Shown here: positions 12,407-22,673 of the stretch, piece after piece | Layout: the number at the start of each line of letters is the position of its first letter | Position numbering within the stretch: the first letter of the stretch is position 1 | Program-made: the position numbers and the translations under genes | Assembly: GCF_000315625.1 (NCBI RefSeq) | Contig: NW_005434583.1 | Location: 32,032-96,031, forward strand | Source: Guillardia theta CCMP2712 | Lineage: Eukaryota > Protista > Cryptophyta | Direction: 5' to 3' | Length of the DNA: 64,000 nt | The notes under the pieces: generated by a model | Database searches by the model: none | What the model was told of the DNA's origin: nothing | The model's input: the letters and a program-made list of their open reading frames with translations, nothing else

Positions 12407-13720
<1,314 letters not shown>

Positions 13721-15853: not shown

Positions 15854-17039
15854 TGTGTCTGATGTGCACTAGCTCGACTTAGTTCCAGCAAGAGATACTC
15901 TCCACACAGTCAGCTCCAATGCCTATTGCTCTTCGTTCCTTTCTGTCAATACTTGAGTGCACCCAATGCGAACGGCATCCAAATACCACTGTTTGAGTTT
16001 CCTGTTTCAGAGTTTGAAGATAAAACAACACTTGCTTGTCACTGCCGCATTCTATATCTCATATCATCAGCATCTTGTCCCTTGAATCCATCGCTCCTCT
16101 CCTTTCTGTCTTGCACTTGTTCTCCTCCTTGCTCTGTCCCCTTCGCTCCCTCCTACGTACCAGGCTCATCCCTCCAATACAGAAAGGGTTGCTCGGAGGG
16201 GGTGGGGGTACAGGAAATCGTCGATGGCAGTCGAACGACACACCTCTATGGGTGGGTAGTCAAAGACTCTCTGTGGGGTGGGTGGTATTGCTTGAGTTGT
16301 CCGCAGGAAGGGGTTTGTATATCTGATAAAACCACCGGATATTGTGGGGTAGGGTCCTCCATTATCAGGTAAACGTGGGAGAGAGGGGTAGTGACTGGAA
16401 TTGGGTGGGTGGGGTTGATGGGCTGACAGTAGGGGTACTTGTTTTAGGTGCAACGAAACACAAATAAAACACAATTTTTTTAAAAAATATTTTTGACTTA
16501 AAATAAAACCGAATAATCACTAACAGTATACAAAATCATTTAAATATATATTAAATAGCTTTTAAAAATATCTGTCTTTGTAAAAATATTCTAAACCTAT
16601 GTACACGGGGACGAACTCCGAGGGCTTAGCTGCGTCTCCCAATCTATTGAAATTTCCTACCGAAATATGACCAACGTTTCTGAAAACTGAGGCAGAAATA
16701 TCAAATTGATTTCTGATCTCATGAAATACCGGCGGGCCGCAGCTTGACTTCGGCCGGCCATGCCAGGAGTAAAACTTAGCTCAGTTATCCGCTCAAATTT
16801 TACTCACCGGTACCACCATGGCTGGGCAGCCGGGGCCCGGGCAGTCCTGACACTGAGGAAGAAGAAAAGTTGAGACGCATCATGCCTGCTGAGCAGGCTG
16901 AAGATGGAGGAAGACTCCTAGGCTCGACGCCTGGGCTTGCTCATCTGAAGGGAATCATGCTTGAGGAAAGATCCACTGCTCGAGTGCAAGGCAGTCTGAA
17001 AGGATCCTTGCTCCGTCCCTGATAGTCGTTTCGGCATCG

Positions 17040-18685
17040 ATGCCTTGTTCGATGAATCGTGTGATCGCAATGTCAGGCGTACGTGGTTTCGCGAGCAGAA
17101 TCTGGTATTTCTTCGTGCTTTGTTTGCTTTCAGGCACTGTAGGAAGAGTAGAAGTAGGACCTGGACATGGGGTGGTACTGCTCCGTTTGAGAGGAGGGCA
17201 AACGGGGTTGAACAGAACTATCGTCGTTCCGAGCAAGGAATGCCCATCCATTCGGGATGGACTGGAAGAGGCCTGCATGATTGACGAGCTCAAGCTGAAG
17301 CAAGGGGTGCACAAACTTCCCTTCTCGTACCCCATAGTATCGAGGACTGTGCATGTTAAGGGAGAGGAAGAGACTTGGATCATCGGGAGGTGGAAGGTCT
17401 CGGAAGAGGGAGGGGGAAGGTGATGTCCCATCGCGGCGATGTTCATCTGACCCTGTTGCGACGCTTGCGACAGCTTCAGTCGGCTCAAGATCGCGGAAGC
17501 TCCATCAGCCAAGGCGCCGACAACAGAAGAAGACGATTGTGATCGCATTTCCTCCTCCTGCCCTCGAGCATCACTGACTTTCAACACGACTAGTGAGCAC
17601 GTTTGACATCTCCGACTCCAAGTGGTCTTTCTACAAAGTTTGTCTGCACAATATCCAGGGAGTTGCTGTGGGTTGCAAGAGCATCGGTCGAATCAGCGCT
17701 TACCATTAGCCCTGTAATGTGCAGATCCATGGAACTTCTGCAGCCAACGTGCTTATGGACAACTGTCTAGTAGGAGGCGGTTCCCCAGAGCCCAACGGGC
17801 AGGCAAAGTGAGGGAGAGGAGAGAATGCTTGGATATCCTCATGATCGCTTCTTCTGCTTGTACATTACATTGTTTTTTCGTTCTTTGTGCTTCCCTGGTC
17901 TTTGCTGTGCACTCTTCAGTGATTGTCGTGGCAGGATCGGTATCATCATGAGCAACAGATGCCGTCTGGAGCTCAACCAGAGCACTGTTTGCCTGCCTTG
18001 CTGCTCGACTAGCATCTCACCCCTTCCCCCAGATTGCCTGGTGCGAAAACTTTGGGGTTGACATCGATGCGCAGACGCACATGCAGCTCCTGCAATGCTC
18101 CGTCAGAGAAAACAGGCGAGACTTCAAGGGGGGAGGCTGAGGATGATGTTCCAGGGCTCGGCAGGATTGGAATTCAGGTCGGCGATGGCTGTGTCGCCGA
18201 CATCCAGGAATGTGAATTCGAAAATGCCGTATGCTCGCTGAGGTAGCTTCCCGATCTTCCTTCACCATTATGTGATGTCCGAGCTTCAAACCTGGCAGGA
18301 TCGACGAGAGGGCACGTTACACGTCGCAGATCTTCCTGCGCAACAGCTCCATGGATCGGAATGTGAGTCTGAATGCCGCCCAAAGGCCAACGTGTGGAGA
18401 CATGAGGAGCAAGGAATGAGCAGAGAGCAAACAGGGAGGGCAGGGGCAGGGGCAGGGGCAGGGGCAAGGGCAGGGGCAGGTGGTGGTTGAGTGAGTTGGA
18501 GTTGGAGCTTTGCTTCAAAGTTGATACAGTGCGTTGATGGGAATTTTCAGGTCTGGTTTGGAGGGAGAAGGCCTGTCCGCAACAGGAACGACCCTGAGGA
18601 TCTGGTGAAGGAGCACATGATGAAGTGCAGCGCTGACGGCATGACAAGGTGGGAGACAGCACCTGGTCCTCGGAGAATCAGGTGA
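17040..18685 (+). CDS. signal peptide + LRLRGG + right-handed beta-helix (pectin-lyase-like) protein, multi-exon
   Basis: Hydrophobic leader IWYFFVLCLLSGTVG, LRLRGG at 17181-17198, then TIVVPSKECPSIRDGLEEAC...LKQGVH...TVHVKGEE (typical beta-helix cap). Repeats such as VLMDNCLVGG, LELNQST, MQLLQCSVRENR and ADIQECEFEN follow. The start could be 17040, 17052 or 17070. Confidence 0.6.
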
Positions 18686-18959
18686 GAGAGAAGGAGAGGG
18701 TAAGGGGAGGCGCGAGTTGGGGCAGAGGAGAGAGTCTGAGATGTGAGGAAATGGAGGGGAGCGCGAGGAGGATGATGATGAGGGAGGGAAGGGAAGAGGA
18801 TGACGAGTCAGGTTTTCCTTTGATGAGTTTGACAGGAGGACCGATCGAATGTGTACCAGTACACGGATATCTCATACAATTATATGTGAGGGGAGAAGAA
18901 TGAAGATTGATGGAGATGTTGATGTTTTGCATGATTTCTCTCAACTTGACATGGTGGCG

Positions 18960-22378
<3,419 letters not shown>

Positions 22379-22459: not shown

Positions 22460-22559
22460 NNNNNNNNNNNNNNNNNNNNNNNNNNNNNNNNNNNNNNNNN
22501 NNNNNNNNNNNNNNNNNNNNNNNNNNNNNNNNNNNNNNNNNNNNNNNNNNNNNNNNNNN
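22460..22559. other. assembly gap (100 N)
   Basis: Run of N. Confidence 1.
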
Positions 22560-22673
22560 GGGAGGGAAGCGTCACAGCTTTCCTCATTTTTAATACAACG
22601 AAACAGGAAGAATCTCCTCCTCCTCCTCCTCCTCCTCCTCCTCCTCCTCCCTGCTTCCCTCCTCCTTCACATC

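Follow-up and report, generated by a model that had tools for sequence, protein, structure and literature searches.

The stretch of DNA considered here (the window, 64,000 nucleotides of contig NW_005434583.1) comes from the cryptophyte Guillardia theta CCMP2712, and our subject within it is GUITHDRAFT_116051, a plus-strand gene for a beta-helix protein whose N-terminal leader ends in LRLRGG, the last six residues of ubiquitin. The gene's coding part begins with an open reading frame (ORF) at 17040-17423, the translation of which starts with MPCSMNRVIAMSGVRGFASRIWYFFVLCLLSGTVGRVEVGPGHGVVLLRLRGGQTGLNRTIVVPS. Its features are listed below in window coordinates.

16872..18889, + strand: transcribed gene, from the RNA 5' end to the stop codon (spliced RNA contigs X1, X2 and X4; raw RNA-seq joints X18)
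17040..17144, + strand: predicted signal peptide, residues 1-35 (peak hydrophobicity 2.5 in a 9-residue window; helix in the model of the orthologue; alignment with Hanusia)
17145..17180, + strand: variable, transit-peptide-like spacer RVEVGPGHGVVL (not conserved relative to RIQRTTGKGRGIF of Hanusia or to environmental homologues)
17181..17198, + strand: LRLRGG, end of the leader and proposed maturation site, with the cut after Gly53 and before Gln54 (sequence, alignment and class evidence)
17199..17419, + strand: start of the mature protein within exon 1 (alignment A1; AlphaFold2 (AF2) and Pfam results for the orthologue)
17474-17538, 17594-17667, 17725-17807, 17935-17986 and 18033-18115, + strand: coding exons 2 to 6a (GT..AG RNA joints, frame checked)
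18116..18164, + strand: GC-AG intron of 49 nt (joint 18112>18162 with 4 shiftable bases; donor GCGAGA, acceptor CAG)
18165-18242, 18299-18362, 18551-18604, 18649-18681 and 18836-18889, + strand: coding exons 6b to 10, the last including the TGA stop (RNA joints)

As re-modelled from these data, the gene has 11 exons and a coding sequence running from 17040 to 18889 that specifies a product of 339 amino acids. Exon 1 (16872-17419) has no internal joint in RNA contigs from three studies or in a few raw RNA-seq reads, and because spliced RNA contigs span it, the leader region is part of the mature mRNA. Ten exons follow, separated in the RNA contigs by GT-AG introns of 44-188 nt and by the single GC-AG intron. 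The spliced translation is collinear from end to end with P0015, the orthologue from Hanusia phi (219/339 residues identical), down to a protein end that reads ...YTDISYNYM before the stop in G. theta and ...YTDISYSYL in Hanusia. No paralogue was found in the G. theta genome (assembly of 87.1 Mb in 669 contigs), and the gene is thus single-copy. In the public model P0014 (288 aa), three coding stretches, among them the hydrophobic signal-peptide core, are mistaken for introns; the false introns include 17085-17132 and 17304-17357, and the RNA contigs are continuous through exon 1. Because P0014 lacks the hydrophobic core, targeting predictions drawn from the public catalogue would miss the leader. 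The 49-nt GC-AG intron is removed in run X4 and kept in X1 and X2, and since its retention introduces a premature stop, it explains the 253-aa MMETSP product P0001 (ending ...RRDFKGGG). Retention could reflect inefficient splicing at a weak donor, or it could be regulated.

The leader is compact. Its hydrophobic core, IWYFFVLCLLSG, occupies residues 21-32 (17100-17135). Translation might instead begin at Met11 (17070), the residue that pairs with Met1 of the Hanusia protein in the alignment. We recognize the signal-peptide part by a hydrophobicity heuristic rather than a trained predictor, together with a helix predicted in the orthologue (residues 11-21), and the cut after TVG is an estimate by eye. 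The spacer that follows has 12 residues, which puts the motif 15 residues from the hydrophobic core, within the range of 10-49 for the sampled class described below. F, Y and W are all missing from the stretch that links the core to LRLRGG (GTVGRVEVGPGHGVVL); any plausible signal-peptide cut, the exact one being an estimate, would therefore leave a non-aromatic residue at +1, where an aromatic one would direct the protein onward to the stroma. LRLRGG itself forms residues 48-53 and is identical to ubiquitin residues 71-76.

A first-pass annotation of the window, made from the letters alone, had drawn attention to an exact LRLRGG at 17181-17198 between a leader and a beta-helix domain, preceded by no ubiquitin fold and written in codons other than those of a true ubiquitin nearby. 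These observations have all held up. The position of the motif is confirmed by the ORF translation and the RNA-supported exon 1. Pfam is blank for residues 1-53 and for five homologous leaders, even at E<=10, and AF2 models the equivalent part of the orthologue with low predicted local distance difference test (pLDDT) scores; a ubiquitin fold is absent because the part upstream of the motif amounts to 47 residues, hydrophobic core included. As for the codons, four of the six differ between the leader (ctc cgt ttg aga gga ggg) and the true ubiquitin at 13152-13169 (ttg cgt ctt cgt gga ggc). That ubiquitin belongs to a second use of the tail in the window which the annotation had also reported and which is real: at 13083-13200 the C-terminus of a true ubiquitin runs into the nickel-hook start of a Ni superoxide dismutase (ubiquitin-NiSOD), with LRLRGG/HCQVPCG at the junction (a slash marks such boundaries throughout).

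Homologues were sought with phmmer, using exon 1 as the query against 1.84 billion representative sequences, which returned 13 proteins in all. The true homologues among them come from Guillardia, Hanusia and six marine environmental groups at 30-45% identity, and a wider profile search of the family added nothing beyond the same small set; judged by these searches, the beta-helix family is small and taxonomically narrow. On the Tara contig of one environmental homologue (L001), a neighboring RlmF-like gene has both bacterial and diatom matches at ~45% identity.

Alignment A1 (nine sequences, eight lineages below 50% identity) reveals what has been kept in the leader. Each true homologue with a complete N-terminus has a hydrophobic core, then an unalignable spacer of 12 to ~160 residues, and then L-[RK]-G-G, in the forms LRLRGG, FRLRGG, LALRGG, VRLRGG, LSLRGG/SHLRGG, RRLRGG, FALRGG, SHLRGG and TRLKGG. 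After the motif come 5 to ~40 variable residues and the conserved R-x-x-x-V-P-S-x-x-C-P-x-L-Q-D-G-L, which in G. theta begins 5 residues past the GG (R-T-I-V-V-P-S from 17214) and forms the first strand of the beta-helix. The only invariant columns of the leader are L, G and G, with R/K conserved. The probability that four residues match somewhere in 45 is ~0.002 per lineage, and the retention of the motif in eight lineages is therefore the work of selection rather than chance.

The motif is also widespread in the genome. A degenerate DNA pattern for LRLRGG has 353 matches in the G. theta assembly, of which we examined the first 100 listed, on contigs C1-C22. The exact peptide is encoded by 73 of these 100, as against 32% expected by chance, none of the 73 being true ubiquitin, and because the codons vary freely, selection must be acting on the protein. 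We then scored a locus as leader-bearing when the same open frame had, 20-100 residues upstream, a Met and a 9-residue window with a mean Kyte-Doolittle hydropathy >=2.4. Such leaders precede LRLRGG at 34/73 loci, compared with 1/25 for the reversed peptide GGRLRL (Fisher p = 6e-5) and 12/532 for arbitrary positions in other frames, which bears out the expectation of a positional enrichment behind signal peptides. Because introns interrupt some leaders, the true leader-bearing fraction probably lies above 34/73, and the class of LRGG leaders probably extends to more than a hundred G. theta genes. What the first-pass annotation had presented as an isolated curiosity of one gene is thus better described as one member of a class.

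GUITHDRAFT_116051 fits the dimensions of this class. Leader length in the 34 sampled loci is 34-88 residues with a median of 52.5, and its own leader has 53; it likewise falls inside the range of the class when seven published proteins are added to the 34 loci (LRGG 34-90 residues from the start Met). In the spacers of the 34 loci S, A, L, P, R and G abound, and D and E are scarce. None of the 34 leaders has Pro at P1', and P2' is frequently acidic. What follows the GG differs from locus to locus: the N-terminus of eEF1A (GKEKHHCSIVVIGHVDSGKS, with GG/GKEKHH; Pfam GTP_EFTU), a class I S-adenosylmethionine-dependent methyltransferase, a RETICULATA-like protein, a weak CBM20 match, and a protein starting MKLFTHNLL that is Trm112-like by eye.

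These data also dispose of the alternative that the motif is a chance hexapeptide in a low-complexity linker. Amino-acid frequencies lead one to expect ~1.4 copies of LRLRGG per 10 million proteome residues. The same account has to accommodate a match of ~0.002 per lineage across eight lineages, an exact peptide at 73% of the pattern matches where 32% is expected, and a signal-peptide association of 47% where the controls give 2-4%. Homologue conservation and signal-peptide enrichment refute it, and we regard it as scarcely credible.

The connection between LRGG leaders and the periplastid compartment (PPC), which is what remains of the cytoplasm of the red-algal endosymbiont, comes from proteins of published location. 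The reference set of PPC proteins with full sequences was the ASAFind 2.0 supplement (PMC12136025, Appendices S2 and S3), according to which six G. theta leaders have been localized to the PPC in Phaeodactylum by green fluorescent protein (GFP) fusion (Gould et al. 2006). In all six, LRGG stands directly before the mature protein. The endings, all from PMC12136025, are as follows.

Starch synthase ugg-t, gt_164385: ...MSLRGG/AGSD (GFP-localized PPC leader)
EF-1alpha, gt_84077: ...MLRLRGG/GKEK (GFP-localized PPC leader)
14-3-3: ...ALRLRGG/VDGE (GFP-localized PPC leader)
RRM1: ...PLRLRGG/FRGD (GFP-localized PPC leader)
Cyclophilin (CyP): ...ALRLRGG/GLPY (GFP-localized PPC leader)
Ubc8: ...IPLRGG/ANPT (GFP-localized PPC leader)
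Periplastid Cdc48: ...MRLRGG/NVAM (same leader ending)

Two of the published PPC proteins turned out to be loci already present in our blind genome sample (L017/L122 and L059). In the part of the same supplement that we consulted for plastid proteins, LRGG is absent from the F-type stromal leaders among the 23 cryptophyte entries; the sole LRGG leader among these 23 belongs to XP_005839318 (...ALRLRGG/SAATHV), which has no Phe at +1. A pair of FBPase-like paralogues in Appendix S9 illustrates the same division, XP_005821930 having ASAF without LRGG and XP_005839318 having ALRLRGG without Phe. The first-pass reading of the motif as a processing signal that mimics ubiquitin is therefore supported in part: conservation among homologues, the genome-wide association with signal peptides, the six GFP-localized leaders and the absence from the stromal leaders consulted all tie a selected, ubiquitin-tail-like signal at the boundary between leader and mature protein to the PPC. 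The further proposals of that reading, a deubiquitinase-like peptidase that cuts after GG or an engagement of SELMA by the motif, are candidate mechanisms, and the isolated status of the motif falls away.

The PPC ubiquitin of G. theta is informative about the chemistry to be expected in this compartment. Its precursor, gt_155024, consists of a signal peptide, a degenerate ubiquitin-like domain (Ubl) ending in RVRGG, ubiquitin, and SY (PMC12136025, Appendix S3), a layout that calls for cleavage after RGG within the PPC. The Ubl of gt_155024 might equally be taken, along with the ubiquitin-NiSOD gene in the window, as a hint that LRGG leaders are worn-down remnants of an ancestral N-terminal ubiquitin fusion, kept by inertia, and the environmental leader P0019 does show IQD...EDGR...RLRGG by eye. 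The leaders are too short for such an origin and have signal peptides at their start. They share nothing but LRGG, an ending that recurs on dozens of unrelated genes. Searches for ubiquitin remnants came back blank, both with Pfam in six leaders (E<=10) and with BLASTP of the P0019 leader against the C-terminal half of the window's ubiquitin. The remnant account is thus largely refuted, and we consider it very improbable.

A looser form of the ending, xRGG, occurs in PPC-set proteins of the diatom Thalassiosira pseudonana: Der1-1 has FDLRGG, sSec14 FQIRGG, TrxH LSLRGG, sCdc48-2 IGRGG and sCdc48 SARGG (PMC12136025). Going by these sequences, the mark at the leader's end may therefore predate the split between cryptophytes and ochrophytes, or may have travelled with the plastid.

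Association with the PPC and resemblance to ubiquitin would fit equally well if LRGG served for recognition and not for cutting. According to this proposal, the ending is a mimic of the ubiquitin tail that attaches to the ubiquitin machinery of the PPC (E1/E2/E3, Ufd1-Npl4-Cdc48, or a UBX/PUB adaptor), and the tag licenses or drives translocation through the symbiont-specific ERAD-like machinery (SELMA; ERAD is endoplasmic reticulum-associated degradation) or retention in the PPC, the leader being removed elsewhere or never. Ubiquitin-binding factors mostly read the folded surface of ubiquitin (the Ile44 patch) and not its tail, which sits poorly with this idea. So does the placement of the motif, which always closes the leader and abuts native N-termini (GG/GKEK in eEF1A, GG/MKLFTHNLL in the Trm112-like protein, GG plus 5 residues in the beta-helix protein), as one would expect of a cut site, when a binding tag could sit anywhere. 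On its side are the ubiquitin dependence of SELMA, the lack in cryptophytes of the ptDUP clade present in other lineages (PMC12412216), and the RGG upstream of Toxoplasma PUBL, which is apparently unprocessed (PMC5487736). We judge a pure recognition role unlikely.

The cargo of GUITHDRAFT_116051 was analyzed through Hanusia P0015, which served as its stand-in for Pfam, AF2 and Foldseek. P0015 matches Pfam Beta_helix (PF13229) with 33.5 bits against a cut-off of 25.9, and the mis-spliced P0014 reaches only 16 bits; no Pfam family matched the window's own exons taken singly, which at 21-27 residues fall below a scorable length. AF2 modelled the orthologue from the nine-sequence alignment with a mean pLDDT of 66. 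The model contains a helix at the signal-peptide core, remains of low confidence through residue 45, LRGG included, and from residue 50 rises from a pLDDT <50 to 94, where a right-handed beta-helix with regular short strands begins that extends to residue ~285 and gives way to a disordered acidic tail. Foldseek against the PDB returned generic beta-helix enzymes only (PL6 and PL9 lyases, pectin methylesterases, GH87), all weaker than E = 1e-3. One may speculate from the modelled fold that the protein has a carbohydrate-binding or carbohydrate-modifying role in what is a starch-storing compartment.

Beta-helix proteins are typical secreted enzymes, and the best of the weak Foldseek matches are polysaccharide lyases and pectin methylesterases, which brings up another account of the leader. 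LRGG could be the propeptide site of an endopeptidase other than a deubiquitinase (subtilisin/kexin-like, S1P-like or M16) in the PPC or the endomembrane system, and the cargo might then be an ordinary secreted or endoplasmic reticulum (ER) protein. Linear motifs behind signal peptides are indeed cut by proteases that are not deubiquitinases in protists, as with PEXEL/TEXEL and the diatom RXL, and our 1.5 kb scans found no leader-bearing UCH or OTU gene. Such an account would have to explain why members of the class are proteins of cytosolic type (eEF1A, 14-3-3, Ubc8, Cdc48, cyclophilin, an RRM protein) with leaders that localize to the PPC, why the conserved core coincides exactly with P4-P1 of ubiquitin, NEDD8 and ISG15, and why LALRGG, the tail of NEDD8, and LRLRGG, that of ubiquitin and ISG15, recur among the variants. 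We therefore give it a low probability.

Published work ascribes leader removal to an unknown protease or a peripheral maturase (PMC5487736), and a 2025 phylogeny indicates that cryptophytes, having no ptDUP clade, must use another enzyme (PMC12412216). A candidate is encoded on contig C13 (L154, C13:4682-9475), where a USP-type deubiquitinase gene appears to have a leader, MKCVMSRVACFVTFFLLGSLV...SLLS/LRGG/DD, upstream of its Cys box. The leader lies at positions 72-239 of the locus and the Cys box near 1500-1800, and the catalytic exon scores 70 bits with Pfam UCH. Near the start there is also a ubiquitin-like-looking stretch, VIDIFVKWKLETLELS. On sequence grounds this gene is a predicted periplastid deubiquitinase, and hence a candidate for the leader peptidase or for a Ubp6-like partner of the proteasome. 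A UCH-family gene, L137 (C274:17633-21055), lies on a small contig in markedly AT-rich-looking coding sequence, with a translation rich in N, K and I and no leader.

Taken together, the anatomy of the leader, the persistence of LRGG while the rest of the leader drifts, the genome-wide tie to signal peptides, and the ending of all published GFP-localized G. theta PPC leaders lead us to favor, with moderate confidence, the interpretation that GUITHDRAFT_116051 has a PPC-targeting leader in which the ubiquitin-tail ending serves as the maturation site. From these observations we infer that the beta-helix protein is destined for the PPC, that the cut falls after GG, and that a deubiquitinase-type cysteine protease makes it. 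The pathway we envision would start with co-translational insertion into the lumen of the ER or chloroplast ER, where the signal peptide would be removed. The precursor would then cross the periplastid membrane by way of SELMA, which derives from ERAD, after which a PPC protease that reads the ubiquitin tail (L-R-G-G followed by any residue except perhaps Pro) would cut after Gly53 and so release a right-handed beta-helix protein of ~286 residues starting at Gln54. More tentatively, and here our own expectation leans the other way, the PPC leader maturase in general may be a deubiquitinase-type protease, so that algae with red complex plastids would practice the ubiquitin-fusion trick without ubiquitin, with the beta-helix protein a PPC resident. 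Were this true, a four-residue ubiquitin tail would let a resident enzyme free any cargo with its native N-terminus, and the beta-helix protein would be a previously unrecognized resident of the cryptophyte PPC.

Several points weigh against leader maturation at LRGG. Cleavage after GG is a prediction, for this protein as for the others of the class. Deubiquitinases usually require the folded body of ubiquitin and cleave bare LRGG peptides poorly. The spacer of GUITHDRAFT_116051 has only 12 residues, short for a transit peptide, and includes a Glu. Beta-helix proteins are typically extracellular, and no feature of this cargo itself indicates the PPC. The signal-peptide calls come from a hydrophobicity heuristic, and the enrichment is measured against a reversed peptide and arbitrary frames. 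As to the enzyme, no signal peptide with LRGG was found within 1.5 kb of three UCH and five OTU genes, a quick scan that leaves leaders farther upstream out of range; the leader ORF and catalytic exons of the C13 gene are not joined by RNA evidence; and that leader-bearing USP could simply be a Ubp6-like partner of the periplastid proteasome. Finally, in Toxoplasma PUBL an RGG that precedes the ubiquitin-like domain is apparently left unprocessed (PMC5487736).

The sequence flanking the coding region has some further features of its own. The first AUG of the mRNA opens an upstream ORF as follows.

16882..17022, + strand: upstream ORF of 47 codons (sequence and ORF list; inside the RNA contigs)

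This ORF leaves a gap of 18 nt to the main start, and another short one opens at 16903; to judge from this arrangement, the upstream ORF may subject the gene to translation control by reinitiation. On the 3' side, between 18836 and 19550, the RNA contigs continue from the plus-strand gene into a convergent minus-strand gene, whose introns at 19006-19189 and 19307-19450 read CT..AC. Because the contigs bridge both genes, the 3' ends of the convergent pair must overlap or abut. A perfect (CAG)n tract of ~50 units lies within the region of the convergent gene at 19613-19770, and an assembly gap shows as a run of N near 22480-22590.

The findings bear on two questions of complex-plastid cell biology: how PPC leaders are removed, and which marks beyond the missing phenylalanine distinguish them. 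The LRGG ending of six out of six validated leaders supplies a simple and testable hypothesis for the cut site. It would also allow the periplastid and nucleomorph proteome to be predicted far more sharply than with the 25-residue window in present use, and would tie the ubiquitin ancestry of SELMA to leader processing. For GUITHDRAFT_116051 itself, the public model is corrected, with its signal peptide restored, and a beta-helix family is provisionally placed in the PPC. We found no description of an LRGG leader ending in searchable full text, including ASAFind 2.0 (PMC12136025) and Moog et al. 2011, a search whose reach did not extend to the original 2006 papers or Curtis et al. 2012; the ending is thus apparently a conserved and undescribed mark of PPC proteins. 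The nearest published statement concerns Toxoplasma PUBL, where an RGG precedes the ubiquitin-like domain (PMC5487736).

Among known systems, the leader resembles the bipartite PPC signals of cryptophytes and diatoms (Gould et al. 2006; PMC12136025), with which it shares a predicted signal peptide, a variable stretch with an abundance of S, A, P and R and few acidic residues, and, by the estimated cut, a non-aromatic +1 residue; the same published PPC proteins, moreover, bear LRGG. The difference is one of coverage, in that published descriptions and predictors deal with the 25 residues around the signal-peptide cut and not with the far end of the leader. Toxoplasma PUBL has in common with it an RGG in an apicoplast/periplastid leader that its authors flagged as a potential deubiquitinase site (PMC5487736). 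The RGG of PUBL, however, precedes a ubiquitin-like protein, as a ubiquitin precursor would lead one to expect, is dispensable and apparently uncut, and has not been extended to unrelated cargo.

At the level of the junction itself, the counterpart is the linear ubiquitin fusion precursor that deubiquitinases cut (polyubiquitin, ubiquitin-ribosomal protein, ubiquitin-NiSOD), where an identical LRLRGG yields a native N-terminus whatever the next residue. In the leader, a signal peptide and 12 unstructured residues take the place of the ubiquitin fold, and synthesis of the precursor on the ER keeps it away from the cytosolic deubiquitinases of the host. PEXEL/TEXEL of apicomplexans (RxLxE/Q/D; plasmepsin V / ASP5) offers a parallel in logic, being a short motif tens of residues behind a signal peptide that is cut in transit, as we suppose LRGG to be, and that marks cargo for further translocation; it differs in sequence, in its aspartic protease, in its ER/Golgi compartment and in its host-cell destination. 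Viral papain-like proteases that also act as deubiquitinases (coronavirus PLpro with its LXGG sites, the tymovirus protease) read linear L-x-G-G in a polyprotein without a ubiquitin body. These enzymes are viral and act in the host cytosol, and no search for homologues of them was made in G. theta; nevertheless, because they cut linear L-x-G-G, the specificity that we propose for the PPC maturase is enzymatically feasible.

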